Source: Cyanophora paradoxa CCMP329
Taxonomy: Eukaryota; Plantae; Glaucophyta
DNA: 64,000 bases
Assembly: GCA_004431415.1 (NCBI GenBank)
Contig: QPMI01000278.1
Span: 38,581 to 102,580, forward strand
Direction: 5' to 3'
The notes under the pieces were generated by a model. That model was not told where the DNA came from, did not search any database, and saw only the letters and a program-made list of their open reading frames with translations. This document shows positions 1 to 33,420 of this stretch, in pieces. Position 1 is the stretch's first letter. Each line of letters begins with the position of its first letter. The position numbers and the translations under genes are program-made.

Positions 1-35
1 GAACGCAAGGGAACAGCGCCCTTGCGGCGGACAGA

Positions 36-3000
36 GTGACAAGCGGAACGTGCAAGAACACGAGCAAGCCCCGAGAATTAGCTAGCCAGACGACACCACA
101 GAGGGCGATGCATGTAAAACCGCTGAACTTAACTGAACTAGCGCTAGTACTAGCGATCCTACTGGCAATGGTGCAGGGAACCGCAGCAGCGCAGGGACTA
201 GCCAAAGGTACGGTCTTCCCGAGCCTCGCGACGGGACTGGTGGCATCTTTCCTGGGCGGGGCAGCAAGGATCAAGGTACAGCTCAACGGTCAGGAGGCGG
301 CGAAAGCGCTACAGGGACGCCTCCGGCTGCTCACCAGGAACGTCTGCTCGTTCACGGACGCGAAGCGCAGCGCCCTCCCCCGCATGGCCGAGGCGTACGG
401 ACTCGACGCAGTAGCCCTCCAGGAGATCAACCTACCCTGCCTGCGCGGGGGCAGGCCAAATCAGTGGGAAAAGATGCTGAACGCGGGGGACGAGAAGGGG
501 ATCGGGCCCTACTTCACGTCCGGCCCCCCGGCGGACAAGGAAGGCGCGCGACACAAGAAAGGAGCCCTGCTATGGATCTCGAGGCGCTGGCGCCCCTACG
601 CGAAGGTCACGCACCGAATCCCGGGTCGCCTGGTAGCCGTCAAGCTTGAGCTCCCGAACTTCAGACAAGTGCATCTGGTCTCGGTGTACGTGCCGCCGGA
701 TAAGAACGAGAACGCGCAAACGAAAGCAGATTACGAACAGATCATGAAGACGCTGCAGGAGCTGCACGAGCAGGTCGATCTTGACCCCTACCCCCAGCCG
801 CTCATCGTGATGGGCGACCTGAACTCGGTCGCGGAAAGGACGAAAGACAGGATCAGCGCGGGAAGGTGGGCGACGCCGGCGGGAGCTGATCACTACGCAG
901 AAGACCTATGGGCCAGAGTCGAGGAATGGGGGTGGAAAGACGCCTACCGGGTCGCGCAGCCGAACGCGAAGGAAGTGACGTACATCCGGGGCTCGACGGA
1001 GGGCGTGCCGGACGAGATCGAAACGGGGAGCAGAATTGACGTGATCCTGCTGAACGGGCCGGCGGCCGCAGACGGGCTGCGGGCGGGCATCGAAGTCGAG
1101 CGAGCCAACGAGTACATGGAATCGGATCACCTGCCGATGATGGCGGACATCGACCTGACCGCCAACCTGCGCATGTTCGGGCCGGGCGCGATCAAACACA
1201 AAGACCGGCCACCCAGGTACAACTTCAAATCGCTGTACGGACCAGGGGAAGCGAAGAAGGAGGCGAGGGCGGAGTACTACGGGATCCTAGAGGAGTACCT
1301 GAAGCCCGTATTAGACAAATACAAAAAGATTGAGAGGCCGAAGAGCGAAGAGGAGTGGAGGGCCTTACCGGAAGCCGCGAAACAGAAGCTAATCAAAGCG
1401 GCGGACGAAGCGTACAAAGAACTGGCCGAGGAGACGGGCCGGGTGGCGGTGGAAGTAGGCTGCGCGGAAATCTTCAGCGCGCGCGACCCGGACAAGCCCC
1501 CCACGATCGCGCGACGGCACAACATGAGCCTAAAGATGCGAAAGCTGAGACGGGCCTGGCACCGGCTGCAGCCAGAGGTCCGACTCGCGCGCCTGCAAGC
1601 GGTCAGCACAAGCCTCCCGGCCGGCCCCCTCCCCCAACCCCGCGCACCGACGGCAGAATGGCAGTACTGGCACGAAGCGCTCGGGGCGGCCATCAACCGA
1701 CTGCGCCGGGAAATCCCGAAGGAGTACAAAAAGCTGAAGACGAAGAAGCGCGCGGAGTACCGGGACAAGACGAGGGAGTGGTTCAAGACGGACCCTGGCA
1801 GGTACTGGCAGGCGACGATGGGCAAAAGCACGGGGATCGTGCCCTTCGAAACGCTTGTCGAAGAAGTACCCGACCATAAAAGGCCACAAGTCCTAGCAGA
1901 TGCCCCGTCAGTGCGCGGACGCCTAAAAGAGTACTTCGAAGAGTACTGGGGAAAGCGGGATCCGAAGATCGACCAAACCCTCAAAGAGAAGCGACTATGG
2001 AAGCACATGTACAAGACCAAGACCCACCTGAAATACGAGGGAGCGATGGACGCGCCGCGATGGGCAGAGTACAACGAGAAAAGGCGAACGCTGAAGCCGA
2101 CGGCCCCCGGAGACTCGAACCTGCAGAACTCGCAGATCAAGAGCTGGCCGGAGGAGAGCGCCCCTAACGAGCTGCTCTACCTCATCATCTGCGACGCAGT
2201 CCGCCTGAGAAGGACGCCCGACTCGTGGAACAAGGCGACAACGGTCGGAATCAGCAAGATCCCAACGTGGGACGGAAAACTGACGAACGTACGGCCCATC
2301 ACGTTGCTTGAGGTGGGGGACAAGCTCATGAAGGGGATACTGGCGGACCGCCTCCAGGACATGCTCGTGAAGCAAGGCGCGCTCAAGGGCCAGAACTCGG
2401 GCTTCCTGAAAGGAAAAACGACGGAGGACCCCCTCTTTATCCTGCAGGGAATCCTAGAGGACGCGCACCAGTACGACAAGGAACTGTACGTCATCCTCCA
2501 GGACATCCGTCGGGCCTACGACACGGTCAGCTGGGAGAGCATGGAGCTCGCATTCCGCAGGCTGAACATACCCGAGGAATATATAGAGCTGCACCGGTTC
2601 TCGCACATGAACAACCGCACGAAGATACGAACGGTGCACGGAACGACGGAGGAATTCAGGAGGGAAGTGGGGCTCGCCCAGGGTGCAGTTGAGGCGCCAC
2701 TTCACTGGCTCATCTTCTACGACCCCTGCTGCACGCTCAGGACTTCGTGGCGAACAAGATGGGGGGAACGCTCGGGCCGTACGAGATGAACCGAGGAATC
2801 GCGAAGGTGACGCACACGGCCTTCGCGGACGACACGCACTGGATTGCCAAGAGCCGCGAGGGAATCGCGGAGAGGGCCCGCCTCGCCAGCGATTTCTGCG
2901 ATATGCACGATATCGAGATCAGCGCCGAGAAAACGCGATACGTGACACGCAACTCGAAGTCGAGCCCGAAATACGGGCCCACGATGAACGCACCGGAGAT

Positions 3001-6000
3001 CGGCAAGGAAGGGAAGCAGATCAAACGAACAATGAGCGAGAACGACCCGCTCAAGGTTCTCGGCGTGTTCATGACAGTCGACCTCGACAGCCGACCCCAG
3101 ATCGACTACATGAAGGAGAAGCTGCGAGCGACCGCGGCCGTGCTCAGAACAAAGACAGTGTTCGAGGAGGAGAGCGTGTACCTGGTGAACACGCTGGTGC
3201 AGGGATTCCTACGCTACGCGGTGAAGATGGCGAAGCTCAGCGATGCAGACGTCGACGAGCTGGAGCGCACCTGGCGGTCGGTAGTTAAACACCACGCGGA
3301 GCTGAGCAAAAGCGTAACAAACGATATGATGACGTCGCCGGCGCCCTACGGCCTGTTCAACCTTCGCGCGCTGCAGCTCGAAGAACAGCTGACGACGCTG
3401 CTGGCGCAGCTGCGCGACACGAACAGCTTAGTGGGGAAGGTACGCATGGAGCGGCTACTGGCCCTCAAAGAGGCAATGGGAACCAACCTGAATCCGCTGG
3501 AGCAGACGGAGCTGGCCCGGTACCTTCAGAAAGAGCACCTGATGGCGCACACGATACACGTGGCGGGGCGCGCGGGGTACACGATCAAGACCACCCACCC
3601 GGACCTCGCCCCGGCCGCACCGGCGGACACGATTCAGAGCCACGTCCCGTCGCGCGACTACGCGAAGATGGCTCCCCACTTAATGGAGCGGGGACTCCTC
3701 CACGTAGCGCAGGTGAGGGCGCCGAATGGGACCCACCTCCTGCCCTGGAAGACCTGGGAAAAGGCAAGATCACGAGCGTGGAGCGAACCAGAATGGTACA
3801 GGCTCCTCCGAACGAACCTCTGCAAGGAGGGGGGCACGGAACTCAAACAAAGCCTGCGAGCGGCCGCTACGCAGTCAGTCTTCGCCAAGGGACACGACAT
3901 CCGACCTGGCACCTTCGCCCTGGTAGCCAACGACACACCAGGAAACGAAGAACTCGCGCTAGTAATGAGCACGAGGACGGACTCGAACGGAACGCAAGTT
4001 GCGCGCATCGCGCACTACGTACCCCGTGACAAGAACATTCAGGCAAACACGATCTGGGAAAAGTGCGACGGAACGTGCTGCTGGGCGAGGGAAGCGGACC
4101 CGGCGGACCCCGAAGTACGCAGCATGAACTTTGACCCCGAGACCTGCGAGTACGATGAGAGAGTAAAGGCGCTCTTCCCACTGTGGGGCGTCCGGTACGA
4201 ACGTCAGACGGAAACCGACAGAGACGAGGAGCGGCCGCCGCGGGTGCGCCTGCCCCCCGAGACCGAGGAGCTGAACGCCTGGAGGACGGGCGGGATGGAG
4301 GCGATAGAATCAGATCGCGAATCGGACATGAGCGAGGATCCCGGAGGCCCACCAAGGCCCGACGACGTAGACCCGCCGCAGGCGCAGGCTGCAGGGAGAA
4401 GCCGGTACCAACTGCGAGCCCGCGCAGCCCCAGTCAAGGAAGGGAAACGGGTGCAGAAGCAAAGCAAACGGAGACGGGTACAGCCGACCGCCAAGCGAGA
4501 GAGAGGGACGGAAGAGAACGACACTCGGGAGCAGACAGCGGCCGCCCCCGAGCCGGAGGATCCCGCCGAGACCGGAGACGAAGAGGAGGAAGCGGGCCCC
4601 GAAGCGCTGCTGGGAGCGACGATATGGCAGATCTACGAGATGCGTAAGGAAGCCATCCTGGAAGCGGGTACAGAAGGGATGCAGACCCGGATCGCCGAAC
4701 GCGAAGGACAGGAGGAGTACCGGATCGACTCCGACGGATCAACCTTCGACCTGGGCAAGGCCGGTAAGGCGAGAGCGGGGTACGCCGTATACGACCCTCA
4801 GGAACCGCACATGCAGTACGGTGGGAGGCTGCGAGGGCAGCTGTCCAATTATAAAGCCGAGCTACACGGGGCCATACTCGCGACGCTGATCGCACCGCTC
4901 AACAAGACGGTGAGGGTACACTGCGACAACCTCTCCGTCGTACGGAACTTCGCCACCCGGGTGCGATACTACAGGCGGAAGTCAGCGCGCAAAGACACAC
5001 GGGATAGCTACGAAGCAGAGTACCGGCTGTGGCGCGCGGTGATGGAGCTCCGCGGGGCAGGAAGGCGGGAGGACGCAGGAGTGGAAGTAGTGTGGGTGCC
5101 GGGCCACGACCCCAACGACGAGATCCACAAGGAAGTCGACCTGCGCGCGAAGGCAGCAGCGAACATGCCCCTCATCAACCCCACCACCGGCGAGCACATG
5201 ACGTACCGGGCCGACGTACTCGTACCCCCCGAGTCCACGGGCTTCGAGCTCATCCACCAGGGCGAGCGGGTTGAGATCGACCCCTGCAGATACATCAGAA
5301 TGCAACACGCGGTGCGGAGCTTCGTCAAGTGGACTCAACTGAGACGGACGGGCGAAGCCCTGCGGGACGCGCTCGGAAGCCCCAAGCAAGCGCTCGAGCT
5401 GCTGAGCGTCAAGTACTGGCACCGCAAGATAAGCGGTTACAGGCACAAGTGGCGGGCGCACGGCGTGAAGGCGCTGATCGACGGGCTGCCACTGATGCCC
5501 GAACGCCTGCGCGACCGCCCGGACCTATACGAGGGGAAGTCAGAAGGGGAGTGCCTGCGGTGCGCCGCGAGCGAGGCCAAACCCAAGGAGACGCTGCGCC
5601 ACTACCTGATCGAATGCCCCAGCCTGCCCACCGCTCACGCCCGCATCCAGAAAGCAGTTGACGAGGAGTTCCTGAAACTGTACGACAAGAAGGTCGTGGG
5701 GGCGGCGCGCAGAGCGCTCGACGCAGCTGAGGAGGCGAAGGAGCGGGCAGAACGGTCAGAGGGCTCCGAGCAGGCCCCGAACGCCCAGGCCCGAAAGCGC
5801 AAGGCGGCGCACCTCGAGCAGCCAACCAAATCGGTGGAACAGGCGAGCCTCGACCTAGAACGCGTCTACAAGGCGCGCCCGGTAGCCGAGAAGAGCCTGT
5901 CGGCGAGAATGCGGTGCTACGACTTCAGCCGGAGGTACGCGCACGCGCCGGAGGCGGGCAATAGCTATCCGGGCGCATGGCACGACATGCAAGGCGAGCA

Positions 6001-6631
6001 CAAGGGTTGGCGCAGCGCGCACGACCTGGATCACATGCGAGTACTCCAGGGCCTGCTGCCGAACGACATGGACAGAGTCTTAGTCGACCTGGGATTCGCC
6101 GAAGCAGAGACCATACCGGTCTGCCGGCAGCTGGCGGAGACGGTGCTCACGGAAGTACACAGCGAGATCTGGAAGCCGAGAAGCAAAACAACGAGCAAGC
6201 ATGAGTCCCGAGTGTGGGGGATCACGCAGGGAAGCAAGCGCGCACCGAAGGGGAACCGAGCACCGACGGTTGGCAGCGAGGCCGACCCAGATGCTGCAGG
6301 AGGACATCCCGAGGACGCTGCTGGAACGCCGAGCGCGGCAGAGGTCGGGGGAGCGACAGCGATGCAAGAAGCGGAGAATGAGAACCGGCCGGATTCGAAC
6401 CCGCCCGACCAGACTCGAATTCGAAAGCGAAAACGCGAACTCGAATCGCACCGTATCGCGGCGCGGGAACTCGATCGGATACGCGGGGAGGGCCACTGCG
6501 ACCACTGCCACGAATACCACGCCCCGGGGACAGCGTGCCACGAGACAGCAGTAGTGGAAACGCTCGCGGCGCGAGCTTTCAAGAACTACCTGAGGTACGG
6601 AGACATGGGGCGACTGCCTAAGGTATCGTAA
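36..6631 (+). CDS. LINE ORF2 polyprotein (APE-RT-RNase H-CCHC), split by one frameshift near 2725
   Basis: ORFs 36..2789 and 2747..6631 join if one C is added to gacccctgctgc, giving FYDPLLHAQDFVANKM...FADD. Single-base loss in a C run (mutation or sequencing error). Confidence 0.9.
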
Positions 6632-16600: not shown

Positions 16601-19600
16601 ATGGGCTCCGGCGCCAGCAAAAGCAAATCCGCGGCCGCCGAGGAGCTCGAGCTTCCGGTCGGTCACGAGACAGCGGCAGCTTCAGCTGCATGCGCAGCCG
16701 AAGATGCTGCGCCTGGCTCGGCGCCTGCAGCAATCGCAAGCGTTCGCGCATCCGATCCTCGATCGGATAGCGACAGTACGTATACAGCCGAGTCGAACCA
16801 GCAACGCGTACGCGTACGGCTCTACGGCATATGCGGGCCGGACGAGCTGCGAGGAATCGACCGGGTGGAAAAGGTGCAATCCGTGGCGCAGCTTGCGTGC
16901 CTGCTTCGGTCGGAGCGCGAGCGCGAGCAAATCAAAGGCGCGGGCAAGGACCCAGTCCCGGAGATGCTGCCGGCGGTCGCCGAGATGGAGCGCAGAGAGA
17001 AGCCTGTAGTAGGAGGGCTGAAGAAAATCTGCGAGGCTGGTGTGTGTGCGCGCGCAGCGCGCGGCGGCGTGACTGACCGCTTCCCTCGCGCGGCGCGCGA
17101 TGTCGACAGTGGTGAACGCCTTCTCTAACGAGCAGACACTGTGCGATGAGGGCGAGCTGACGGAGGTCGGCGCGCTGGTCCTCACGGGCGACCCTGACCT
17201 CTGCCGCATGGTCCGCATCCCCGGCCCGCGCCGCGCGCCCCGCCGCCGGCGCGCCGACGCGCGCGCGCTGCCTCAGCTCGTGGATGCGATCGTCAGACGG
17301 GCGGAAAGGGCGCACCTGAAGGACCGGGCAGCACTCTCCGTGCTGGCGGCCCTCGTGGGGCACCTCCCCCCGGCCACCCTCTTTCCCGAAGACTGGAATA
17401 GACTCCTCGCCTTCAGCGCAAAGCAGGCGAGCGCGCCGCGCCGCGCCGCCGCGGGCGGGCGCGGGCGATGACGGCGGGCGCAGGTGACGGGATTGGACGC
17501 GAGCAGCGTCGACGCCCAAGTCTCCCTCGCGCTCACCGCCGCCGTCCTCGCCGCCGTCGAGTCCATCAAGGACCCCGACGCCTCCTCCGCCGGCCCCTCC
17601 GCCGGCCCCTCCGCCGGCCCCTCCGCCGCCCACTCCGGCGGCCCCTCCGGCGCTGCCGTCGCGTACGAGGCCCCCGCCGCGGCCGCTGCAGGTCGGCACG
17701 GGCGCCCCTCTCGCAGTGCCGCCCGACCCCCGACCCGCCTGAGCGCAGGGGATCGCGATCAGCTGCTGCTGGGCTCGAAGGATGCGACGTCGCTGAGAGA
17801 AAAGCTCGAGCATCTCGTGCAACAGACGCGGGAGAAGAAGCTTTGGCGGGCGGAGGCGGCGGCGGTGCTCGCCAGGCAGGCGCTCGTGGGCGTCGCTGAG
17901 CGAGGCGAGAGCTTGGGGGACTGGGTTCGCAGGGGCAAGGCCGCCGGTTCGAGCCCCGACTCGCCGGCCGCGCGCGCACCGCCAGGCCTGGCCACGGGGC
18001 CTCCGATGGCGCAGGGGACTTAGAGCTTGCCGCGCAGGGCGGATCCTGAAGAAGCTCTACTCGGTCGGGAAGGTCATCGCGGGGGGCATCTCCTCGATGG
18101 GCGCGACAACCGTCATCGACCTCCTCCTGTGGTTCAAGGTCCGCCGGCCGCGGGCTCGAGCTCCCGTCTGTGACAGCTTCGGCGTTGACGGCCGGGCAGG
18201 ATCTAGCGACTGAAGACGAGAAGGGGGGCGCCCTGGAGGCCGTACGAGAGCTGTGGAAAGACGTCCGCACCGTCGTCGGCAGGGATCCGCAGGGCGAAGC
18301 GCGGCAGGACTGGTCCGCCGCGGAGCTCGTGGGGACGTGCGGGGCGTACGCACGCGCTCACGCCAGGGGTGCAGGTACGGGCCGGCGCGGCTGCTGGGCC
18401 TGGTGGCGGCGAGCGGCCGGATCGCAGATCTGCAGGACCTGTTGACCAGCCGCGAGGGCGAGGACCGCAAGGCACGCCTCGACGCCTGCGCGACCTGCCG
18501 CCCTCTCGCCCTCGCCCTGGCGTCCGCCCTCGTCAACGTGCGTGCCCGTCCTGCACGCTCCTGGAGCAGCGCTAGCGCGGCACGGCTGCGGACGTCCGCG
18601 GGGGGGCGGGCAGGTCGCGGAGGGTCGAGACGACGAGCAGGCGGCGGCGGCGGTGGATCTGCTCAACCAGCTCGCGCTGCGGGCGGAGCAGCTCGGCGGT
18701 GCAGACGGAGTGGAGGTAGCGGCCGGGGCCCTTGCGCACGTGGCGAGGATGCAGGGCGGAGGAGGCGTGGTGCAGGAGGCGAGGGCGGCGCTGCAGAAGC
18801 TGGCGGAGCGCGTGGCGGCGATGCAGCTGCAGACGACGGCAGTCAACGTTGGCTGCCTCATGTCGTTCGCAAGGCAGTCGAAGGCGGCCGCGAAGCGCGC
18901 CGCGGGGGTGCTTAGCTGCGCTGGCGACGCCATGGCAGCGGTTGGCATCGACGGAGGAGCGCAAGTGGCAAAGTTTGGGGAGACCGTTCAATGCGCCCTG
19001 GACAACGAGCATGTGAAGAACGTGCTGGCGGCTGTCAACGCCATCCACGGGTCCGCACTGCAGCTGTCCAGAGGCTCGTCCTCTCGACCGCAGGTCCCAG
19101 AGCTGCCGCCCAACCTCCCTCGGGCTCTGCAACTCGTCGCGGCCCCGCGTGCACTGGCGGTCGCAGGTCGGGCCGTGGGGGGCGAGGAGCAGGGAGCTCG
19201 AGGGGGCGACGGGGACACGGCCACGGGGGCGCGAGCCGCGGCGAAGTTCAGGCTCAACACGTACCTTGCACGAGCGCTGAAGGAGTACGAGGACGCGGTG
19301 CGGCCCGCCGACGTCGCGATCGCCGCTGCGATGCATCGTCTCTGACGGGCGCTCGCGGCGTCGGCTCCGGAGCAGTTGGCCGCCTGGATGCGGTCCGCGT
19401 CGGCAAAGAGCGTTCACATCCACGGGCACGAGGACGACATCAACAAGGCCGAATGGATCATCAACAGCCTCTCCGACAATCTCTGGTGAGACGCCCGCCG
19501 CCGCCGCCGCTTCTTCACGATCACGAGCCATCGCAGCGGATCGACTCGGCACTCGCGTCTTCGCGGCTGCAATAGCAGCTGCATGGGGACGGTCTTTGTG

Positions 19601-22600
19601 CTCGTTGCGGGCTCCGCGACGGTCCGAGATGCCACCTGCGTAAAGGCTGTCGATGAGGGTGCGGCGGGTCGCCCGACTCGCGCCCGGCTGGCCCATGCCA
19701 CCTTCTCACAGCGCCTGCAGCGATTGAGGCCGGGCACGATGTCTTCCAGCTGTACCCAGAAGGGGCGCAAACGGCGCTGCAGCTGTTTCCGGATGGCATT
19801 GAAATGCGCCTCAGTCGCTTTGTACACGTCCGCCAATTTGCTGTTAATATTGCAGGCGCCGCTCTTGATACAGTTCGCGCTTTAATTTTTCTTCCCTGCA
19901 GCTGGATACGGATGCGGATGGATCTCCGGAACCCGTGGAGGCTTTTCTGAGCGCCGTGCAGAGGGCCTACTCCACACCCCGGCCAACGCCCTCGCTGGCC
20001 ACCAAACCGCTGTACCAGTGGCAGCCGGCCAGCAGCGGTGGAGTGCAGCCGCAGCCGCCCACGGGGGCACCTGAGTGGGTCCTCGCGGAGCCTGCAGCTG
20101 CTGCCCGCCTGAAGGGCACGCGAGTCTTCTTTTGCCACACAACGGCGCCCGAGGATGTGGTGGCCGTTCAACGGCACATGATCTCTCTGGACGCACATGC
20201 CAACATGGCCTGCTGGTGCCCCCGCCCCCGCCGTCGCGCGCAACGCTCGCCCATGCAACCGTCCTGTCCTGCAGGTCCTACGTGGAGCACTGGCTGAAGG
20301 GCGAGCGCTGGGTCGATGTCGGTGCGTGCGGGCGACTGCGCTCACTATGCCGCTCATTTCTTCGTATGCACCGCTTGCGTCGTGCAGTGGCCCGGGCTAT
20401 CCGCAACTGCACACACTTTGTCCTCGCCGTCCCCCCCAAGCTTCAGAACCGCCAGCTGCGGGTGCATCCCCCCTTTCTGAGCGATTTCACCAATCGCCCA
20501 ACGCCACAGCAGCACTGCGAGGAGGAGTTCTCGTACGCGTGCAGCCAGAACTGCTGGCTCGTCGTGCTGCACCTGAAGCAGCAGGGGCCCGGGGGCGGTA
20601 CGACACGCAAGGACGTCTCGTGGATCAGCAAGCACCTCGAGCGCGTGCCGCCCGAGCGCGTGCTCACGATTCCGGCCTCGTCGGACCCGACCGCGCTCGC
20701 CCGCGCCCTGGGCGCCGAGCCGCAAGCCGCCGGAGGCCACGCGGCCGCCTTCGAGCGGCGGGTGGAGCTGGGCGCCCCTCCCTCGGAGGTGCGCGCACCC
20801 TCGGCCCTTCAGTTGCCCGGAAGGCCAACGTGTCATGCAGGCAGATGCACTGCGGTGGACCGAAGCAGACGTCTTCAACTGGGCCCGCTTGCAAGAGCCC
20901 CTCGCACCGTGCGTCTCGCAGGGGCGCCGGCGGCACTGCACTTCTTGACCATAGCCGGTAGTTTTGCGGGGAAGCTTTCCCTTCTGAACGGGAGGAAGCT
21001 TCTTTCACTCTCCGACTCCGCTCTGGAACAGCTCGGCTTCGATCAGGTCGCAGCGCGCTGGTATCTCCTATCGAAGATTGCCGCTCTGTCCAAGCTCGCG
21101 CTGGCCGGCTGTGACAGAAAGGTGCAGCGAAGCTATAGAGTAGCTATAGTGATGGTCGACGTGAATATTAATGCTGCAGCTGACTCCGCAGTGCAGAAAG
21201 AGGTGCTCTGCTGGACTGAGGAGGAAGTGGTGGAGTGGGTGAAATCGATCGGAAGTCTCGCGCAGTGAGCGCCAGCGTTGCCAGCGACATCCCAATCTCT
21301 CTCGCGAGGCTCGATGCCAAGCGCTCGCGATCGCAGGTTTGCGGGGCTCTTCTCCATGGTGTCGGGATCGATGCTGCTCTCCCTCTCCAATGCGGACCTT
21401 GGGCACCTGGGCGTGGCGAGCTTCGCGGCTCGGCAGCACCTGCTCCAGAAGATTGCCGGGCTCGACCCCGGGCCCCTTCCCCTTCCCTCTTCGTCAGAGC
21501 CCGCGGAGGCGACGCCGGCCAGTGAAGGCAGCACGGGCGGCGCCGCGGGCGTTGTGGAGCTCGACGAGCACAGGGCGCTGGTTCAAAATGCCCGCACCCC
21601 GCGCTGCCGTCTGCCCTTCTAGATCTGCACCCCCAGACTCACATGCGCGCGCCGCAGTACGCGAAGGCGGTCTCCGCGGAGCTCTCGCGCGACCAGGACC
21701 TGGCGCTCTACGTCCCGCCCCTCGCCACGCCGGACCCCAAGCTGCGCACGCCGCCCGAGGTGCCCCCCATCAAATCCGAATCCGTTGCCACCGTGTTCGC
21801 AAGGCGAGCGCTCTGACCACGAGCTCGGACCGCAGGACCTGCACGAGGCGGTCGAGCGGTTCCTCGCGGCGCTGCTGCCCGGCCAGCCCCGCGGCCCCGA
21901 GACGAAGCGCGTGCTCCTGCTCCTCGGCGGGGCCGGCACCTCCAAGAGCACCTTCCTCCGCTTCCTGCACCGCGACGCCTGCGAGCGCTGGGCGAGAAGC
22001 GAGCACCAAGGCGCCAGCGGCAGGCGCCTGCCGCTCGTCTTGCACGTCTCGCTGCCGCAGCTCGCCGGCGTGACTGGCGGCGTACAGACAGGGCTTCGCA
22101 AGCACGTCGAGACCAAGCTCGGAATCGCCACAGACAACCTGCAGCTGCCAGCGCTTCGAAAAAAGTGCTCGCCAGCGCGCGCCAAATTTTAGACGAGCTC
22201 CGCTCTTTTGAGCTGTAAAGGGGGCGTCAGGTTCGGGCTCGTCCTCCTGCTCGACGGGTACGACGAAATGGGCACGATCGCGACGAATGGCATCAATCTG
22301 TGGCAAACAAACGGCCTGTCGGGGTGGGCAGACGGCGCCATCCTGGCGTGTAGAACGGAATTTCTTGCGTCTCTGCCCAAGAACAAATCGCCCGAGGTGA
22401 CAGACTCTGAAAGCGCTAGCCGCGGTCTCTCGAACTCGCGCACTCATAAATTAATGAACAATAGGATTGCTTTGCGCCTACGGGGGAGGACAGCAAGCCC
22501 GCCGGCGCCGTGAGAGGGCTGGCGCAGCTGCACACTGTTCTTTTCGACGGGCGGCAAGTGCGCGGCATTCCTCCGATGCCTCGAATGGCGATCGCGAGCT

Positions 22601-25600
22601 CGCTCCTCGTGATCAGCGACACGCGAGCGCTCATCGAGATCGGGCGCGCAGCGGGAAGCATACCTGCGGCGGTACGCGCAGCGCCACGCGGGCGAGGAGC
22701 GCGCCTGGGGCTTCGAGGAGTACGCGGACGTCTTTGGGAGCAGTCCGCATCTCGCCGACCTGGCCGAGAACCCATTTGCCCTCTCCATGCTCGCCCGCGT
22801 CCTCCCCTCCATGTCCGCGCCCCGACTCGAGGCTGGGGCGCCTTGCGAAGAAGTCCGTCGAAGGGCTCCGCGCGCAGGGCGCGGACCGGCGAGCGGCTCC
22901 GGCTGCGCGACCTGTACAGGCTCTTCCTGCGGGACTGGCTGCTGCGGGAGCTGCACCGCGGGGGCGTCGACAGACAGCGGGATGAGCAAGGTGCGCGCGC
23001 GCGCGCCAAGGACGCTCAAAACGGCGGCCTGACGTCCCGCGAGGCTGGGAGGCGGCGGAAAGCGCCTTCGTCGACGACGGAACCGAATATTGCAAGCGCT
23101 TCGCCTCCCACCTCTTCCGCGTGAGCTCCGTCCCCGACTCCCAGACAATTGCAACTTGCATTGAACTAGTACTTTACGTGTCCGCGCACGTGCAGATGTC
23201 GGCCAGCCAAGCGACGATTCAGGACGTGGACTTGAGAAAGCGAGAAAGCGAAAGAGGAAGGACTGACGCTTCAAATTCGAATTCCGCGCTTGAGCAGCCT
23301 GCTCTTTTGAGATTGCTGGCCGACTACAAAAGGGTTTTCGTGCGGAACAGCTGCCCGCTGCGGCGGTGGCGGCTGGGCGACAGGCTCGGCTTCGCGTTCG
23401 TCCACAAGACGCTGCAGGAGTTCCTCTCCGCAGAGGCCCTCCTCGATTCCGTGCGCCAAAGCCGCCGGCCCAGTACTAGTCGCCTCACCTGCCCTGAAAA
23501 ATACGTTGCGTGTATGCGCAGCTTAAGCTTCGAGCTTCGGCATCAAGCTTAAGCAGCAATGATTCGAATGATGGTATTGCTTTTCACACGCGGTGCGCTT
23601 TTCACACCAGCTAAAGATTCGTTTTTGGAGCGCGACTGACTGCGGGTCAGTTCAATTGCCGGAGACACAACGCTGGTGCGCTTTCTGGTGGACGCTGTGC
23701 ATGCTCATGATCCCAGCTGCAAAATAGACATTGCCGAGGTGCAAAGATGCGCACCGCGGCAACTTATATAATTAGCAAGTCTCTGTGACGATTTGACACG
23801 CGGCCGTGCTGTAGGCCCTCTTTGCAATGATCTCCGGGAGTCGGGGCGTGGCTGAGGATTCAGCGGAGGCGATGGCATCCTCAAATGCGGCCACTGTCCT
23901 CGTCGCTGGTCTGTGCATGCCCCGGGCCCCTCTGTGGAAGCGTGCAGCCTTTGATGACGCCTACCCATATGCATGGTCGTGAGCAGCCCACTGGTCCTTT
24001 GCGCGGAAAGACCTGCGCGGAGTCCGAATGCGTGGGGCAAACTTGTGGAGATTGGAGGCCGGGGGAGCGGATTTGCGAGGGGCCGACCTCCGAGGCAGCG
24101 CCCTGCACGAGGCCTGCTTCGAGTATGCAGACCTGCGGGGGGCGCGCTTGGAGGACTGCCAGGTTCGGACGCAGCCGGCAATTGTGTTGCGCAGTCCAGT
24201 CATGTCTGTCGCTTTGAGTAAGGTGCGCCGCGACTTCTCCGGACTCACCGCATCTATTGATCCTATTCCGATCATGAATTGAATTCACCGCCTCTATTGG
24301 ATTAGTGACAATAAATTTCAACGAATAGTGATTAACAATCTACGGAAACTAGCCGCTGACTCATGATCAGTGAGCGGGGCTGATAAGTGGGGCTGGACGG
24401 TGCAGGATGGGCGGCGGATTGTCTCGTGTGGCGAAGACGAGAAGCTTCGTGTGTGGGACGCGGAGACGGGCGTGGAGCTCACAACGGTGCCGGAGGAAGG
24501 CATTGATATCGGCGCCGTAAACTCTGTGGTGATGTCGGCGGTGCGTGGTGGATGGCATGCGCAGTGGTCCGCAAAGGCGCGATGCGTGATGTAACTGGCA
24601 AATCGGGCAGTTTAGGCTTTTAATTTGTTGGGTCCCGAGAAGCTTCAGAGTGCCCGAGCGAGACGGGGCTGCTCACGGCGTTCGGGGCGGGGCGGCGCAG
24701 GACGGGCAGCGCATCGTGTCGGGCAGCGGTGACAAATCGGTACGGGTATGGGACGCGGAGACGGGCGAGCAGCTGCTGCTGTTGGAGGGGCACGAGAAGG
24801 CTGTGCGTTCCGTGGCGATTTCGTCGGTGCGCCGTCAGGGTGGGGTATATTTGCATGGAATCGACGTCGGGTTCATGGTGCTGGATCATGGAATAGGGAT
24901 GGTATTTGCAAAGATCTAGAAATGCGGGCTGTCGGGGCCTTGACCAAGCTTGAGACTGCCGTGCAGACGTGCGCGGGGCAGGAAAAGCGCAGGCTGACAG
25001 CCGCCGCCGGGCTGCGCAGGACGGGCGGCGCATCGTGTCCGGCAGCAGTGACAAGTCAATCCGGATCTGGGACGCGGAGACGGGCAAGGAGCTGCGGAAG
25101 CTGGAGACCGAGGGGCACTGCCGCCCGGTGACCTCCGTGGCAATATCTGCGGTGCGCGGTGGGATAATGTGTGCAGAGGAAGCCGTGTGGCCATGGTCTT
25201 GAGAAGAAACGTTAACAGGACTGTGCTGATGGCGAGTACAGAAGTGTTTGACTGACAGCCGGGCCGGGTTGGGCGGCGCAGGATGCGCGGTTTATCGTCT
25301 CTGCCAGTGACGAGGACGAGTTCGCGCTTGTATGGAACACGGAGACAGGCGAGCAGCTGCAGAAGCTGCAGGACCACAGCGAACGAGTCAACTCCGTGGC
25401 GATATCCGTGGTGCGGTGGGAGGTGGGGCACGGGAAGTGTCCCAGTCGGCACCATGAGCCAGCCAGGCATCATAAGCCAGCCAGCCAGCCAGTCCTAGAA
25501 ATCGATTCTGCATAGAACTGGCGGCTCAAACAGCGTCTATGTAAATGGAGGGGGGCTCCATTGGCGGCGCAGGACTAAGCAGCACGGCGCAGGATGGGCG

Positions 25601-28600
25601 GCGCATTGTATCAGGCTGTGGAGACAACTCGGTGCAATTGTGGAATGCGGAAACGGGCAAAAAGCTGCAGCAGCTGCAGGGAAGTTTCCTTCCTGGATCC
25701 GGCTGTGCAGGCTCCGTGACAATATCGACGGTGCGTGGCAGGATTCGGATGTGGGGCATCGGGTGGTGGGGCAGCGATATCAATGCATATGGTGTCGCGC
25801 GATCGGAGGCAGCTGCACGAGAGTGCGGCCACGGGTAGCCTGGCAAGTCCCTAGAGCAAGCGAGGCGAATTAAGAGCCGTACTATGGTAACAGGCGCGGC
25901 TGACAGCAATCGTGGTGCTGCGCAGGATGGGCGGCGCGTTCTGTCGGCCAGCGCCGACAACGCTGTGCGAGCGTGGGACACAGAGACGGGTGGGGAGCTG
26001 CTGCACTTGCAGATGCACGACGGATTCACCGGTGACATTAACGTGGTACGAAGAATGTTGACCTCCGTGGCTGTATCAGAGGTCCGTAGCGCGGTGTTCT
26101 CAAGCCTGAACATGTGAGATGAGCGGAGCTAACATACAAGGCGGCGCGAAGCAGGATGGGCGGCGCATTGTGGCAGGCTCCTACGAGGCCGTCGAGAAAT
26201 CGGACTTCGACGTCGACTCTTCATTCAGCCGGCCAATTTGGGAGGACATCGGTACAGTGCGGGTGTGGAATGTGAATCCAGACGAGGAACTTCGACAGCT
26301 GCAAGGCCACAGCAGCACGGTTAGTGCCGTGGCAATTTCGACGGTGCGTGGCAGATGAATATATATATTAGAAGGACGGGGCTGCGGGGCTGAAATCTGG
26401 GGTGGGGCTGGGTAGGACGGGCGGCGCATCGTGTCGGGCAGCGGTGACAAGTCGGTGCGGGTATGGAACGCGGAGACGGGCGAGCAGCAGCAGCTGCTGC
26501 AGGGGCACGAGCAGGCTGTGGATTCCGTGGCGATTTCGTCGGTGCGCCGTCAGGGTGGGGTATATTTGCATGGAATCGACGTCGGGTTCATGGTGCTGGA
26601 TCATGGAATAGGGATGGTATTTGCAAAGATCTAGAAATGCGGGCTGTCGGGGACTTGACCAAGCTTGAGACTGCCGTGCAGACGTGCGCGGGGCAGGAAA
26701 AGCGCAGGCTGACAGCCGCCGCCGGGCTGCGCAGGACGGGCGGCGCATCGTGTCCGGCAGCAGTGACAAGTCAATCCGGATCTGGGACGCGGAGACGGGC
26801 AAGGAGCTGCTGGAGCTGCCGGGGCATAATGCCTCCGTTTGCACCGTGGCAATATCGAACGTGCGTGGCTAAAGGCGTGGCACGGAAGGACTGGGCACGC
26901 GTCACAGCGAGTATATAATACAGGACGGCGTGCCGCAGGACGGACAATACATTGTGTCCGGTGACGATGATGGTTCGGTGCGGGTGTGGGCCTTGGAGAC
27001 CGGCGCGCAGCTGCATCACCTGCAGGGGCACGGAATCCACCGCGTCAGCTCCGTGGCAATATCGGCGGTACTTTGTGGAATTGAAGGCGTTGTTATAATA
27101 TTTTAATTTGCGAAGGCGTGATTCCGGAAAGAAACTAGCTATAGTAAATTCACAGGCTTTCGTTGGTTTCATTGGGTTCGGAGGGGGCTCATGATCATGA
27201 TCATGATCAGTGGCTGTGCCATGGGCCAGAGGGGCGCGCGCGGCGAGGCTGATCATGACCCCCCCATGGCCACGCCGCATGTGCAGGATGGGCGGCGCAT
27301 TGTGTCGGGCGGCTTTGACAGGTCGGTACGGCTATGGGACGCGGAGACGGGGGAGCAGCTGGAGAGCTGGGCTCGCGATTCCCATGTACACTCCGTGGCA
27401 ATATCATCGGTGCGTGACCAAACCGGGGCGTTGGTGATAGTCATGGCATGGGGTGCGTGCAGAATTCTCGAATGGAACAGTTGAACTAGGAATTCGAGGT
27501 CTAGAGCTGCGACAAGCGATATCGATTGGGGGCCGTTGGGCCGGGCCTTGACGCGCTTTGGCGTGTCGCAGGACGGCGAGATCATTGTGTTTGGTACCGA
27601 CGGGGTGGTGTATATGTGGGTGTGGAATGCCGAGACGTTCTGCCCATGGCGCTTGAGACGAAAACTGGAGGGGCACAAAGGAGTGGTGTTCTCTGTGGCA
27701 ATATACGAGGTGCGCACGCGGAAGACGGCGCGCTGTAGTTAGACGGCGGTGCACGCGAGAAAGGCAGGACTGATGGTCGGGGCCGCGCGGCGCAGAAAAT
27801 GTGGCGCATCGTGTCGGGCGGCTCCGACCAGACTATTCGGGTGTGGGACGCAGAGACGGGCGAGCAGCTGCAGAAGCTTCAGGGAAACGGTCCGGTGGCC
27901 TCCGTGGCGATTTCGATGGTGCGCGGGCCGGGGAAGGGCGGGGCTGGCGACAGGAAGGGCATGCGCGGCAGGCCCGAGACCTAGGGAAACTGGGGCAGAA
28001 TCTCGCCCGCCAAGGCTGCACATAAGAGCTCGCGCGAGGATGTCTGGACTGACAGTGGGCCCGGGGCTGGCCATGGGCCGCACAGGATGGGCAGCGCATC
28101 GTGTCAGGACACTTCGATGTGTCGGTGCGGGTGTGGGACGCCGATCGCGAGGTGCGCAACACCTCTAGGGATATCGATGGAGCTCGGTTCCGGAACTCGA
28201 ATGGCAGATCAATTGCAAAACAACTGATCATCACCTTTCTGCGTTCATGTATCCAGGAGTTCGATGAGAAGACGGTGGAGCGCCTTCCTCCAGGTTTTGA
28301 ATATGGGGCTACAATCAAAAAGGTTCGTCATTGTATCCGGGGTCAAACGCAACGAATACGTTAAATATAATTATAATTAGCGGCTACCAGTACCGGACCA
28401 TGTTGCAATTGATATCAGATACCGCTAGCGCTGATCAACTTTGGCGCAGCCATACATAACCACGCGACGCATCCAGCGCAACGCCCAGCTTGAGGCCCGT
28501 GGCGCGTGGCTGCTCTCTAACGATGTCGAAAAGGCAGAGGAACGCATTCGCGAGGCCGTGGCCAAGCACGCCCAGGTGAGTCGCGGCACCTGTGCGGTCG

Positions 28601-28788
28601 CGCGGTGCCCGCCGTGTTGGTACTGCCCGCCAACGCTCGCGTTTGCGCTGCGCATGCAGCATGCGCAGATAAAGACGAAGTCGGCTTTGGATGGGCTGAT
28701 CATGTGGCGGCTGCTACCGCAGCTCGGCGTCGTGATCGGGCACCTCTCCACCGCATGCCCTTCTAAACCCCCTGGCCCCCCACTATGA
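16601..28788 (+). CDS. NLR-like STAND protein: myristoylation motif - helical/ARM-like region - TIR - SAM - SAM - NACHT-like ATPase - pentapeptide repeat - 14 WD40
   Basis: [11 protein letters not shown]: RVFFCH..ACW|[14 protein letters not shown]|[25 protein letters not shown] (~20120-20720). SAMs: [11 protein letters not shown]|[25 protein letters not shown] and [11 protein letters not shown]|[25 protein letters not shown] (~20840-21460). NACHT-like: [60 protein letters not shown] then [14 protein letters not shown] pentapeptides, then WD40 exons. Joining of the 16601-19485 part is inferred. Confidence 0.85.
17584..17650 (+). repeat. Coding 12-bp tandem repeat (SAGP)n
   Basis: ccctccgccggc, about 5 copies with the last ones degenerate. 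Confidence 0.85.
24406..28151 (+). repeat. Array of single-repeat WD40 exons, all phase 0
   Basis: Exons 24406-24540, 24701-24826, 25020-25151, 25282-25410, 25593-25730, 25926-26081, 26155-26343, 26416-26541, 26735-26860, 26939-27067, 27287-27409, 27572-27709, 27796-27918 and a half exon 28086-28151. Consensus ag|[19 protein letters not shown].|gt; every length is a multiple of 3. Confidence 0.95.
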
Positions 28789-29663: not shown

Positions 29664-30892
29664 AGAGATACCATCAATATCAGAAGGAATTACATCACTA
29701 AGAAGCGGGGACAAAATTGAGAAAGATAAATAACAGGAAGAAGACAAGTAAGAGGAACAACAAGACGACATGGAGGCGGAGGCGAAGCAGGACGATGCGA
29801 AAGGGCAGAGCTACGGCACGAGGTCGAGGAGGACACAGGAGGCGGAGCAGGCGGATCAAGAGCAGGCAAAAGAACAGTCAAAGGAATCACTAAAGCCGGC
29901 CGGGGTCGAGGCGGGCAATCGAACTGCAAACGACGGCGAACAACAGGTCGAGCACGAGGACTATAGCTAGTATTGAAACTAACTCTAGCATCAACACTAC
30001 GATCAGAATCCGAACCAGACCGAACTAAACTAGAAGACGAAGAAGTACGCCGGCGCCGGCGGGATACGATCGCGACCAGCGAAGCAGAAGACAAGGACAA
30101 AGGCGGTAGTCCGGTATCAAGAACAAAGGCCGGAGGGTCCGGCCCGGCAAACCGCCGGGGGGAAGTAGAAGGAGCCGCAGGCTCGGCAAGCCGGCGACGG
30201 GTACGACCACGAGTCCGGAAGGAGATCGGGGAAGCCGGTCCCGGAGCTGAGGGCCCAGGAGCAGAGCCAGGAGAAGGTAAGCCCGGCGAGAAATCTGACC
30301 CGGAGCCGGAACCCAGCGAACGACGACGACGAAGAGGCCCCCGAGGAGCCACGACGGGGGAGCTACCGAGCAAAGTACTGACAGCCGGCGCCGAACACGG
30401 CGGCGGAGGTACCCCGCAGACAGTGGCAGGCGGAGAGTCCAGGGTCGATCGAGAGATCCGCCGACGGGAATGCGGCGGGGGCCGACGAGACGGAAGAGGC
30501 GAGGAGGGGCCGAGGAAGGGTCGGAGGCAGGGGAAGGGCCACGAGCAGGTGACGGGGATCGCTGCCGGCGCCGAAGAGAGGGCAGCAAAGCAGGAGAAAG
30601 GTCGGGTGGCGCCGGAGCAGATGACACGGAGGTCATGGCCATGGGCGGTGCAGAGAGAGACGAGCTCGAGGGCGCAAGGGCCCGACGAGGGCGCCGGCGG
30701 CGAATCTCACGAGCGCCAGGAAGCGGGATAGGACCCGCAGATGGGACCCGAGGCGCCGAAGGGGGAGCAGGGAGCCGGAATGACGGGGAGATCGAAAAGA
30801 GGACAGTCTCGCCAACACTCGGAAGCGGGGCAGAGGCCGAGGACCCGGAGCTCGAGGGGGGGAGGGAGGGCGGAGGAGGAGAGAGGAGGCGG

Positions 30893-33420
30893 CTATTCGA
30901 AGGGTATGGAGAATCGAGAGCGGAGGCGAGGGAGGCCGAAGTGATGGCGAGCTCTGGAGGCGAGGGGGCCTGCAAGCGGATCCGGGAAAGTGGATGCAGA
31001 CGCAAAGAGACCGGGGACGTAGAGGCGGGAGGGGCATGCAAAAAGATAGTGCCGCCCAGCGTCACAGTTGCAGAAGCGGGGCAAGAAGGATGGGCTGAAG
31101 AGGGGGCTGAACCAGGAGGACGTCAGAAAGAGGGCCTCGCAGGGGCGGAAGTGGAGGAGCAAGGGGAAGAGGTAAGAAGGGGTATGGAGCTGCAAGATGA
31201 CCAGGGACCTGCCGGGGAACAGGCAAGTGAAGAGGCCCCGTGACAGCAAGTTGTAAGGAGGGAGGAGGCAGAGGCGGGGCCAGAGGGCCAAGGAGCACAG
31301 GGATCGGGACCGCAGGGAATGGGGGAAAGGAGCGTCGAGAGGGGCAGCGAGAGCAGGAATAGGAATGGGCCCAAGGGTCACTACAGGGGCCAGAGCAGGA
31401 GGGGACGGCGCAGGAGGCGGGCGACCACCAGGGATCCCCAACGGGACATTCCCACGAACGGCAAACTCCGCAGGATTCCGGAGGACAGAATCGATGTCAC
31501 GCGAAGAGACGAGGTTGTCAGCACCGCCCGAAGAAGGAGCGCCGGACGAGTCAGAATCAGAGCTTGAACTAGAACGATGAGAACCGGTACCAGACTCTGA
31601 ATCATGTGCGTCATCATCCGAGGCAGCCTGATCATCAGCGTCAGCAGCAGCCAAGCGAGCGCGCCGCTCCTCCAACAAGGCCGAAGCCTGCGAAAGGGTG
31701 AACTCGAGGTACGACATATTTCTGTCCCAGGCGGCAACAAGCGCGGCGCGGTTGTAAGAAGGCGCATCAATGTCAGCCTCCTCAAGATCGCACCGAGCGC
31801 GAGCAACCTGTTGGATGGAAAATACGCCAGCAAGGATCGCTCCAAGTGAGCGAAGGCAGAAGGCGGGGTTAACTTTACTGCGCAAAATGGGCCCAGATAA
31901 ATCCGGAACCGAGAGGATGTGGAAGAGAGAGAGCTCAGGCACTGCGACCTCTTCACGCTCATCCGGTGGAAGAGTAGAAGCCCAGAAATTCAGGCGCTCA
32001 CGAATGAAATCCCAGAACGAACGAGAAAGCGGGCACTCAGAGAAAACGTGCGCGTGAGAGCGAGCAGATCCGTCATTACAAACCCGACAGAAACGACGGC
32101 GGGGCGACTGTTGCTCGCCCAAACGATACAATTTGAAATGCAAACGGTAAAGAGCATCGATCCAAAGCATCGGGAAACACTGAAGGACGACAAGATTAGG
32201 AAGACGGGACGGAGACAAGGCGCCGGGAAACCCCCACTTAGCATCGGGCATCTGAGCGTGGCTAGACACATCGCGAAGCCGCTGGACCTCAAGGCAGTAG
32301 AAGCGACGAACAGAGGAGAGGCGGAGAGGGAGCATACGAGCGAAAGTGAACGCAAGATTATCAAGAGAAAGAAAGGCCGAAGGGCCTGCGCCAAGAACAA
32401 AAAGGCCAGGCAGGGTCCCGCGACGAAGAGAGAGGAAGACAGCGCTGAAGCAAACATGCAGCGGGAGCAAACGGGACAGAATTGAATTGGAGCTCGAGGA
32501 TAGGCCCACAGGGTGGGAAGCCGCAGGGCGGCAAGGAACGCGCGGTATGTAGTCCAGCACCCGTGGAATTATCTGGTTATCGCGAACAGGGAAGGCAACA
32601 AAAGTACCACTTGGGCCTCGAAGGAGAGCAAACGAGGCGTCCGGTCCGGACCACCAGAGATGCTGAGGCGGCGATGCAGGGCCTCGAGAACCTGGCGCCA
32701 AGTAGCCGGGAGCGCAGAACACAGACTAGGGAAAAAGGAGTGGAGGGCGGAGGAGGCAGCTGCTGGAGCCCGGAACCCCGGGCAGCACAATCCCAGATAT
32801 CGCAGACCCGCAGCAAGCCGGACCGTGCACAGCGACTCCAGTCGACCTCGTCGCCGGGAGTACTGAACAGAGGATTGAAGAAAAGAGGTTGGGATAACAC
32901 TTCGGGAGAGTTACGAGGTTGACACACGCCCTGGCGCTGAGCCCACTCGGAGAGAGTCCGCTTCCAAATAGGAGGCAAGTCAAGTCTGTCAAGTGGGAGG
33001 CGGAGCGAGACAAGGGCGGGGCCATAGGAAAAAGGTGCCAGCTGAGCGTCCAGTTTGCTCAAGAGGTACTCCTTCCAAGGAGCTGAACAAGAGGGGTCAG
33101 CGAGCAAGGCCACCCACTTCATTTTCAGCGATAACGAAAAAGCTCGAATATCCGGGCAGTTGAGACCACCTTGACGCCACGGCAGAGGAGAAATATACTT
33201 CGAAAGCTGCCCGCTCACGCCAGCAAAAGCGCGAAGCTTCTCTTGCCATGTCGAATACTGAGCATCAGGGGGGTCAAGCAAATATAGAGCATAATGTAGG
33301 GACCCAATAAATACAGCCCAGGCAAGGAGAACGCCGGAACGCATCGGCATGCGATAAGTCTTCGCTTGCTGGACACGGATATCAAGAGCAGCGGTCTTTT
33401 TCCGCCAGAACCGAGACAGA
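30893..33420 (-). pseudogene. Frameshifted C-terminal half of the LINE ORF2 (no RT core)
   Basis: Three frames must be joined (shifts near 32775 and 32685): ..DIWDCAARG/FRAP..LPATWRQVL/..WWSGPD..zf-RVT. Confidence 0.8.

Follow-up and report, generated by a model that had tools for sequence, protein, structure and literature searches.

An NLR-like receptor gene with paired TIR and SAM domains and a SARM1-like list of parts in the glaucophyte Cyanophora paradoxa

A 64,000-nucleotide stretch of the Cyanophora paradoxa CCMP329 genome (assembly GCA_004431415.1, contig QPMI01000278.1, positions 38,581 to 102,580 of the forward strand; hereafter the window, in whose numbering all positions are given) carries at 16601-28788 a predicted gene that raises two questions, whether a single algal protein joins TIR and tandem SAM domains, parts familiar from SARM1, to a NACHT-WD40 receptor, and what such a protein might do. 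The initial annotation had read the locus as a single membrane-anchored immune receptor with SARM1-type effector parts. Our analysis identifies the product as an NLR-like STAND receptor with a SARM1-like parts list, whose domain order is ARM_5 - TIR1 (without the catalytic Glu) - TIR2 (with the Glu) - SAM - SAM - NACHT - pentapeptide - 14 WD40. As its output we favor the SAM-assisted assembly of an NAD+-processing TIR domain, a reading to which we assign a probability of roughly 0.4. All of the parts named by the initial annotation lie where it had placed them on the + strand, and the features are as follows.

16601..28788, + strand: the whole gene, 49 exons and 2,561 amino acids/codons, an open frame with canonical introns
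16601..16621, + strand: predicted N-myristoylation start (Gly2, Ser6, Lys7), from sequence, the start codon being predicted by the model
17110..19042, + strand: alpha-solenoid ARM_5 / NLR_Helical domain, exons 2-9, by exon-wise profile matches
19376..19970, + strand: TIR1, a degenerate TIR-like domain, exons 10-13, in which Ala stands in for the catalytic Glu (CVKA) and a Cys-rich segment replaces the normal BB loop
20124..20683, + strand: TIR2, exons 13-16, of TIR_2 type, with a putative catalytic Glu at 20525-20527
20841..21121, + strand: SAM1, exons 17-18, by profile matches
21197..21472, + strand: SAM2, exons 19-20, passing the Pfam SAM_2 cut-off on the window DNA, with the intron position of SAM1
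21658..23450, + strand: NACHT NTPase module, exons 21-28, including helical and winged-helix parts, by profile; a search with the family profile finds NLRC4 (E = 1.8e-5)
23989..24160, + strand: pentapeptide repeats, exon 32, Pfam E = 1.8e-11
24170..28142, + strand: 14 WD40 repeats, exons 32-46, one unit per exon, all phase 0
24684..25103, + strand: a 420-bp segment that comprises exon 34, an intron and a portion of exon 35 and has 95.7% identity with 26399-26818, six repeats later
28257..28788, + strand: predicted tail exons 47-49, in frame with canonical splice sites

The first matter to settle is whether this is one gene. A three-frame reading gave the 49-exon model, whose 7,686-nt frame contains one stop only, the terminal one, and whose introns are all GT-AG or GC-AG (three GC) and 51-219 nt long; the joined 2,561-residue translation served as a frame check, with searches run exon by exon or through paralog identifiers. 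Parts of 19200-22400 are present in eleven sequencing runs guessed to be RNA, and four probable RNA runs, from three samples and two studies, were aligned to 18530-24500. That interval contains 24 introns, and the 15 splice joints that were listed all agree with the model, the other nine being unlisted. Spliced contigs link exons 8-33, that is, helical, TIR, SAM, NACHT, and the first WD40 exons. A 2,970-nt contig runs from exon 9 through both TIR and both SAM domains with the internal offsets of the model, and its length places its end at 21936, within the NACHT exon; a 1,854-nt contig covers approximately 20665-23335, other contigs connect exons 28-33, and the join of exons 8 and 9 is evidenced by loose contig ends. 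Because these contigs are spliced, they do not derive from genomic DNA, and they run from the TIR/SAM exons into the NACHT exons without a gap, which rules out that the two belong to separate genes. The locus is therefore one real spliced gene, as had been proposed, on evidence that consists of assembled contigs rather than single molecules and directly covers exons 8-33, and not exons 1-7, the start codon, the WD40 exons past 24500, or the last three exons.

The protein of the window itself was not found in the protein databases searched, so paralogs stood in for it in fold prediction, profile construction, and the tree. All of its close relatives are C. paradoxa proteins in EukProt. Four paralogs (g4922, g12507, g15007, and g1857) are collinear with the window exons from the helical region to the WD40 repeats, and all domains are unbroken and 44-85% identical to the closest paralog. 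In the EukProt set the paralogs of full architecture are P0001, P0016, P0020, and P0021. Profiles built from the paralogs order the exons into a helical region (exons 2-9), TIR (13-16), two SAM domains (17-20), and a NACHT module (21-28). Pfam gave no match when run on individual short exons of the TIR, NACHT, helical, and tail regions, and neither did a word search with the NACHT exon. On one NACHT chassis the family carries an ARM region only (seven proteins), one TIR (four), or two TIRs (four and one TIR1-only fragment), and the ARM-TIR-TIR-SAM-SAM arrangement is found in four paralogs and the window; g12774 and g22112 are among the paralogs without SAM domains. A quick tree unites the four SAM-bearing proteins at 100 and joins them to the two-TIR proteins at 94. 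Such variation of the N-terminal architecture is as expected of an NLR family that swaps its N-terminal effectors.

The helical N-terminus is the ancestral N-terminal part of this chassis. It aligns with Mortierellaceae-type N-termini over 356 columns (hhalign E = 8.5e-7), and in the closest paralog the ARM_5 family PF23948 is matched at E = 3.8e-5, although at 23 bits this is below the cut-off of 27. The predicted model of the region is an all-helical alpha-solenoid whose fold matches are generic HEAT/ARM proteins only, and the ARM domain of SARM1 is not among its top 50 fold matches, which is not a strict exclusion. On these profile and fold comparisons we assign the region to ARM_5, which we equate by description with the NLR_Helical domain of PMC9815663, and not to SARM1. 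The long helical region of the initial annotation is accordingly correct for exons 2-9; exons 10-13, which it had also counted as helical, form a second TIR-like domain. The closest known architecture is the NLR_Helical-NACHT-pentapeptide-WD40 family of Mortierellaceae and Mycoavidus cysteinexigens (PMC9815663), which has a homologous helical N-terminus and the same NACHT subtype and order of pentapeptide and WD40 repeats, whereas the window protein differs in its TIR-TIR-SAM-SAM insertion, in having SK rather than GK in Walker A, in being intron-rich, and in lying on a separate long branch.

The inserted block begins with the domain that had been missed, TIR1, which aligns with TIR2 (hhalign P = 94%, E = 1.3e-7), resembles TIR_2 clusters by Atlas features at a borderline score of 0.90, and alternates beta and alpha elements in a model of moderate confidence (mean predicted local distance difference test score, pLDDT, of 64). 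The TIR1 profile alone gave no hit in a sequence search of the PDB, exon 11 alone did not match the TIR2 profile, and Foldseek with the two-TIR model returned nothing at E<=0.001. In the window and eight paralogs the catalytic column of TIR1 is Ala or Thr, its alphaD-betaE block is invariant, and a short Cys-rich segment occupies the BB-loop region. At 19409-19580 an invariant His in strand A is combined with C..C..C at the BB-loop site, which could, as a matter of speculation, be a metal site.

For TIR2, the TIR_2 Pfam cut-off is passed in paralogs, exon 16 matches the TIR profile at E = 2e-15, and the model of the paralog TIR2 superposes on the TIR domain of IL-1RAcPb with a Z score of 15.0 (root-mean-square deviation 2.5 over 129 aligned residues), followed by MyD88 at 13.4 and SARM1 at 12.2. 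The third Glu of HCEEEF falls in the catalytic column of solved TIR structures, in helix C, and is invariant in all eight tandem-TIR paralogs. The TIR fold and the Glu proposed by the initial annotation are thus both present, though its helix motif QHCEEEF is to be corrected, since the spliced motif is HCEEEF and the apparent Q codon belongs to the intronic half of the CAGCAG acceptor (joint 20460-20512).

The two tandem SAM domains, also as first described, are each interrupted by a phase-2 intron that follows a 68-nt exon, and this common position points to an internal duplication; the Pfam cut-offs of both SAM_1 and SAM_2 are passed in paralogs. Do these parts descend from SARM1? The likeness to SARM1/TIR-1 is that an alpha-solenoid, tandem SAM domains, and a Glu-bearing TIR_2 domain occur in one chain, and by Atlas features TIR2-SAM-SAM comes closest to the cluster of the SARM1 family, at a score of 0.93, a match that reflects the common set of domains. 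The order is reversed, however, with ARM-SAM-SAM-TIR in SARM1 and the TIR domains preceding the SAM domains here, and the ARM region is not of SARM1 type, neither the SAM nor the TIR domains are specifically SARM1-like, there is an extra pseudo-TIR, and the whole is fused to NACHT-WD40. Compared with solved structures, the SAM domains best match those of Aveugle and ETV6 (E = 0.0003), with SARM1 at rank 20 (E = 0.19), and in sequence matches of TIR2, made without a TIR tree, SARM1 (E about 1e-3) stands behind TIR-STING, Cat1, and plant TIR domains; the domain is a generic TIR_2. The homology to ARM_5, these SAM and TIR rankings, and the fold list without the SARM1 ARM domain lead us to reject descent from SARM1; the protein is not a member of the SARM1 family, the resemblance is convergent, and the SARM1-type parts of the initial annotation do not hold as a statement of descent.

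The switch module is a NACHT STAND ATPase, as initially proposed, with an intact Walker B (22238-22267, hhhhDGYDE) and, in paralogs, a Pfam NACHT match that is significant but below the cut-off. Its Walker A, at 21926-21952, is not a canonical GxxxxGK[ST], having Ser in place of the Gly before the Lys while keeping the Lys and the Ser/Thr, and we suggest from this motif that nucleotide switching may be altered. Such a change is what would be expected if the P-loop were weak or inactive and the protein a sensor or regulatory NLR, whose TIR and SAM domains serve either as integrated baits for pathogen effectors or to restrain active TIR-NACHT paralogs while a partner executes the response. The internal position of the TIR/SAM block, flanked by the ancestral N-terminal domain on one side and the NACHT on the other, and the degenerate features of the TIR domains are consistent with this idea. 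The Ser is family-wide, however, and occurs also in members with canonical TIR domains, so that it does not mark a sensor subclass; the Walker A Lys, Walker B, and the downstream motifs are intact; and a coarse scan of open reading frames found no NLR partner adjoining the gene. We therefore consider a sensor or brake distinctly unlikely.

How, then, might the favored receptor work? In STAND proteins, the binding of a ligand to the WD40 propellers frees the NACHT domain, which oligomerizes into a wheel. In the C. paradoxa protein the two SAM domains directly upstream of the NACHT would act as a collar that concentrates TIR2 locally, and the concentrated TIR2 would cleave NAD+, whether for its depletion or as a signal. 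TIR1 would be a pseudo-enzyme, and since it lacks a normal BB loop but has an invariant alphaD-betaE block, it could provide the partner (EE) surface of a composite active site or cap a filament. Myristoylation would put the complex at the membrane, an anchoring that we infer from the N-terminal motif noted initially, in which we read Gly2, Ser6, and Lys7. Engineered TIR-SAM fusions offer a precedent, in that they boost TIR activation (PMC10242710). We favor this SAM-assisted, NAD+-processing reading because the effector and switch exons are spliced together, TIR2 has a TIR fold and an invariant Glu, and the domains are kept in the paralogs, and further because the architecture of the family varies, the exchange among WD40 repeats recalls that of HNWD genes, TIR-SAM fusions enhance activation, and the Atlas cluster is that of SARM1; each functional step is inferred.

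Several observations weigh against it. In TIR2 of the SAM-bearing clade the beta-A Ser has become Cys and the beta-B/BB-loop Asp is missing, so that the window protein reads FFCH and WSY where paralogs without SAM domains read FISY/FVSY and WFD, and the window TIR2 also lacks a Ser six residues before the Glu. The D594A substitution, which we matched to the BB-loop Asp by motif, reduces the activity of SARM1 (PMC8266388). The folds were predicted on paralog P0021 rather than on the window protein, and the best fold matches of TIR2 are the non-enzymatic TIR domains of IL-1R and MyD88, a weakly discriminating result. The Walker A SK occurs in every Cyanophora copy in which Walker A is readable. 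TLR TIR domains carry the same Glu. Because the Ser and Asp positions have drifted in the SAM-bearing clade, the Glu by itself does not establish an NADase, and from its sequence the activity of TIR2 is uncertain. The same drift suggests that, on the same switch, the TIR pair could be a non-enzymatic scaffold that nucleates assemblies with other algal TIR proteins, in the manner of TLR and MyD88, with those proteins carrying the output. The loss of the beta-A Ser and the BB-loop Asp exactly in the SAM-bearing clade, the absence of the Glu from TIR1, and the adaptor-type top fold matches all argue for it, whereas the invariance of the TIR2 Glu amid variable adjacent positions argues for catalysis, and we regard a scaffold as possible, if doubtful. 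A more specific version of the favored reading, that the glaucophyte independently built a SARM1-like NADase within an NLR, with the pseudo-TIR completing or capping the site in cis and a wheel of NACHT domains with non-canonical P-loops acting together with a SAM ring to activate it, we put forward tentatively and think rather unlikely in its entirety.

The sensor end also bears on the question. The pentapeptide repeats and fourteen WD40 units had both been recognized initially, and the latter are mostly 30-70% alike. The 420-bp duplicate stands apart from these, in that its 193-nt intron is identical at 192 of 193 positions and 24808-25095 differs from its counterpart at one base, recording a recent exchange between WD40 repeats, by duplication or conversion. 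An excess of differences in exon 34/40 over the adjacent intron (11/126 versus 1/193, p = 2e-4) was considered as a sign of positive selection, which we do not claim, since the differences cluster 5' of 24808 and a conversion tract explains them equally well; an apparent hybrid WD40 exon, from loose ends at 24479, reflects exon-34 contigs misplaced on the similar exon 33. Exchange between WD40 repeats is also known from fungal HNWD genes, and in the HNWD (HET-E type) genes the repeats are homogenized and under positive selection at four surface codons (PMC1805685). HET-E and HET-D share with the window protein a TIR-fold effector, a NACHT, and a WD40 array with exchange between repeats, and differ in having a HET domain where ARM-TIR-TIR-SAM-SAM is found here, and the WD40 array here is not highly homogenized. 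Might the protein have no immune role at all, being a membrane-tethered protein of signaling or scaffolding, or else a nearly neutral outcome of the frequent shuffling of TIR and SAM exons in this genome? The contigs have low depth, and the gene is absent from several runs that carry the same species label, as might be expected in that case; five diverged copies nonetheless retain all domains in order, which argues against neutrality, and the related NACHT-WD40 proteins of known function, HET-E and HET-D, are non-self receptors. We give this alternative little credence.

Outside Cyanophora, the relatives are Mortierellaceae proteins (23-26% identity), Mycoavidus genes, and metagenomic and two viral-collection loci. 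Among 163 bacterial, viral, and metagenomic loci no TIR or SAM match was found, and Walker A is GK wherever it is readable, as it is in all Mycoavidus and Mortierellaceae relatives. The core had been likened to expanded families of Mortierellaceae and ciliates; the NACHT and helical domains are homologous to those of the former, and the searches returned no ciliate relatives. In an unrooted quick tree without ciliates or another outgroup, a long branch sets the Cyanophora copies apart and the fungal copies nest among those of Mycoavidus, a topology that does not demonstrate horizontal transfer from Mycoavidus or Mortierellaceae into the alga. The nesting agrees with published suggestions of transfer, and Mycoavidus genomes hold many copies of the NACHT, many with long N-termini that do not match ARM_5. 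It was probably within the Cyanophora lineage that a chassis of Mortierellaceae/Mycoavidus type acquired the TIR pair and the SAM pair.

The initial annotation considered this architecture to be undescribed in an alga or protist, and we did not find it outside C. paradoxa in the proteins, loci, and open-access literature searched. A word-based, length-limited search of the TIR-TIR-SAM-SAM region against long proteins, over the top 8,000 candidates, returned the four Cyanophora paralogs only, and the open-access literature yielded no description of TIR-TIR-SAM-SAM-NACHT-WD40 or of Cyanophora NACHT proteins. Each pairwise combination of the domains is known, and the full combination was found only in this species. 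Plant TNLs, amphioxus, fungal SAM-NACHT, Dictyostelium TirE, and animal TeTIR-NACHT proteins each show one or two of the pairings: amphioxus has TIR-NACHT, TIR-NB-ARC-WD40, and TIR-SAM (PMC2575513), SAM-NACHT is known in fungi and TeTIR-NACHT in animals (TEP1, NWD1/2), and two-TIR proteins include Arabidopsis SADR1-P1, a plant TNL, and Dictyostelium TirE.

Little has been described of innate immunity in single-celled algae, and the present family adds a glaucophyte to the organisms from which ARM_5-NACHT-WD40 proteins have been described, namely Mortierellaceae, Pezizomycotina, and a fungal endosymbiont. Its members, which combine one NACHT chassis with an ARM region only, one TIR, two TIRs, or two TIRs and two SAMs, make up a natural series that allows one to test what SAM oligomerization and a pseudo-TIR add to TIR signaling, whether TIR domains lose catalytic features after gaining SAM domains, and whether a STAND switch operates with Ser in place of the P-loop Gly. 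If the specific version with a cis-acting pseudo-TIR were true, it would be a natural counterpart of engineered TIR-SAM fusions and would mean that an early-branching archaeplastid has a working immune pathway of the NLR type.

At the ends of the gene, MG(C/S) starts are found also in paralogs P0008, P0012, P0024, and P0025, and the EukProt models P0001, P0016, P0020, and P0021 begin at an internal Met that aligns with the end of exon 1 and may be 5'-truncated. No homologue was found for tail exons 47-49, which a comparison with the paralogs did not match. Elsewhere in the window, 1-6628 contains two long A-rich open reading frames on the + strand (3-2786 and 2693-6628) with the look of a retroelement of the long interspersed nuclear element type, and 29700-33000, right after the gene, is strongly A- and G-skewed with a composition like that of the element at the window start, and is possibly another mobile element. 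An exonic fragment at 47276-48421 on the - strand resembles phosphoribosylaminoimidazole carboxylase, with what we take to be a PurK-like motif, and is presumably a housekeeping neighbor.

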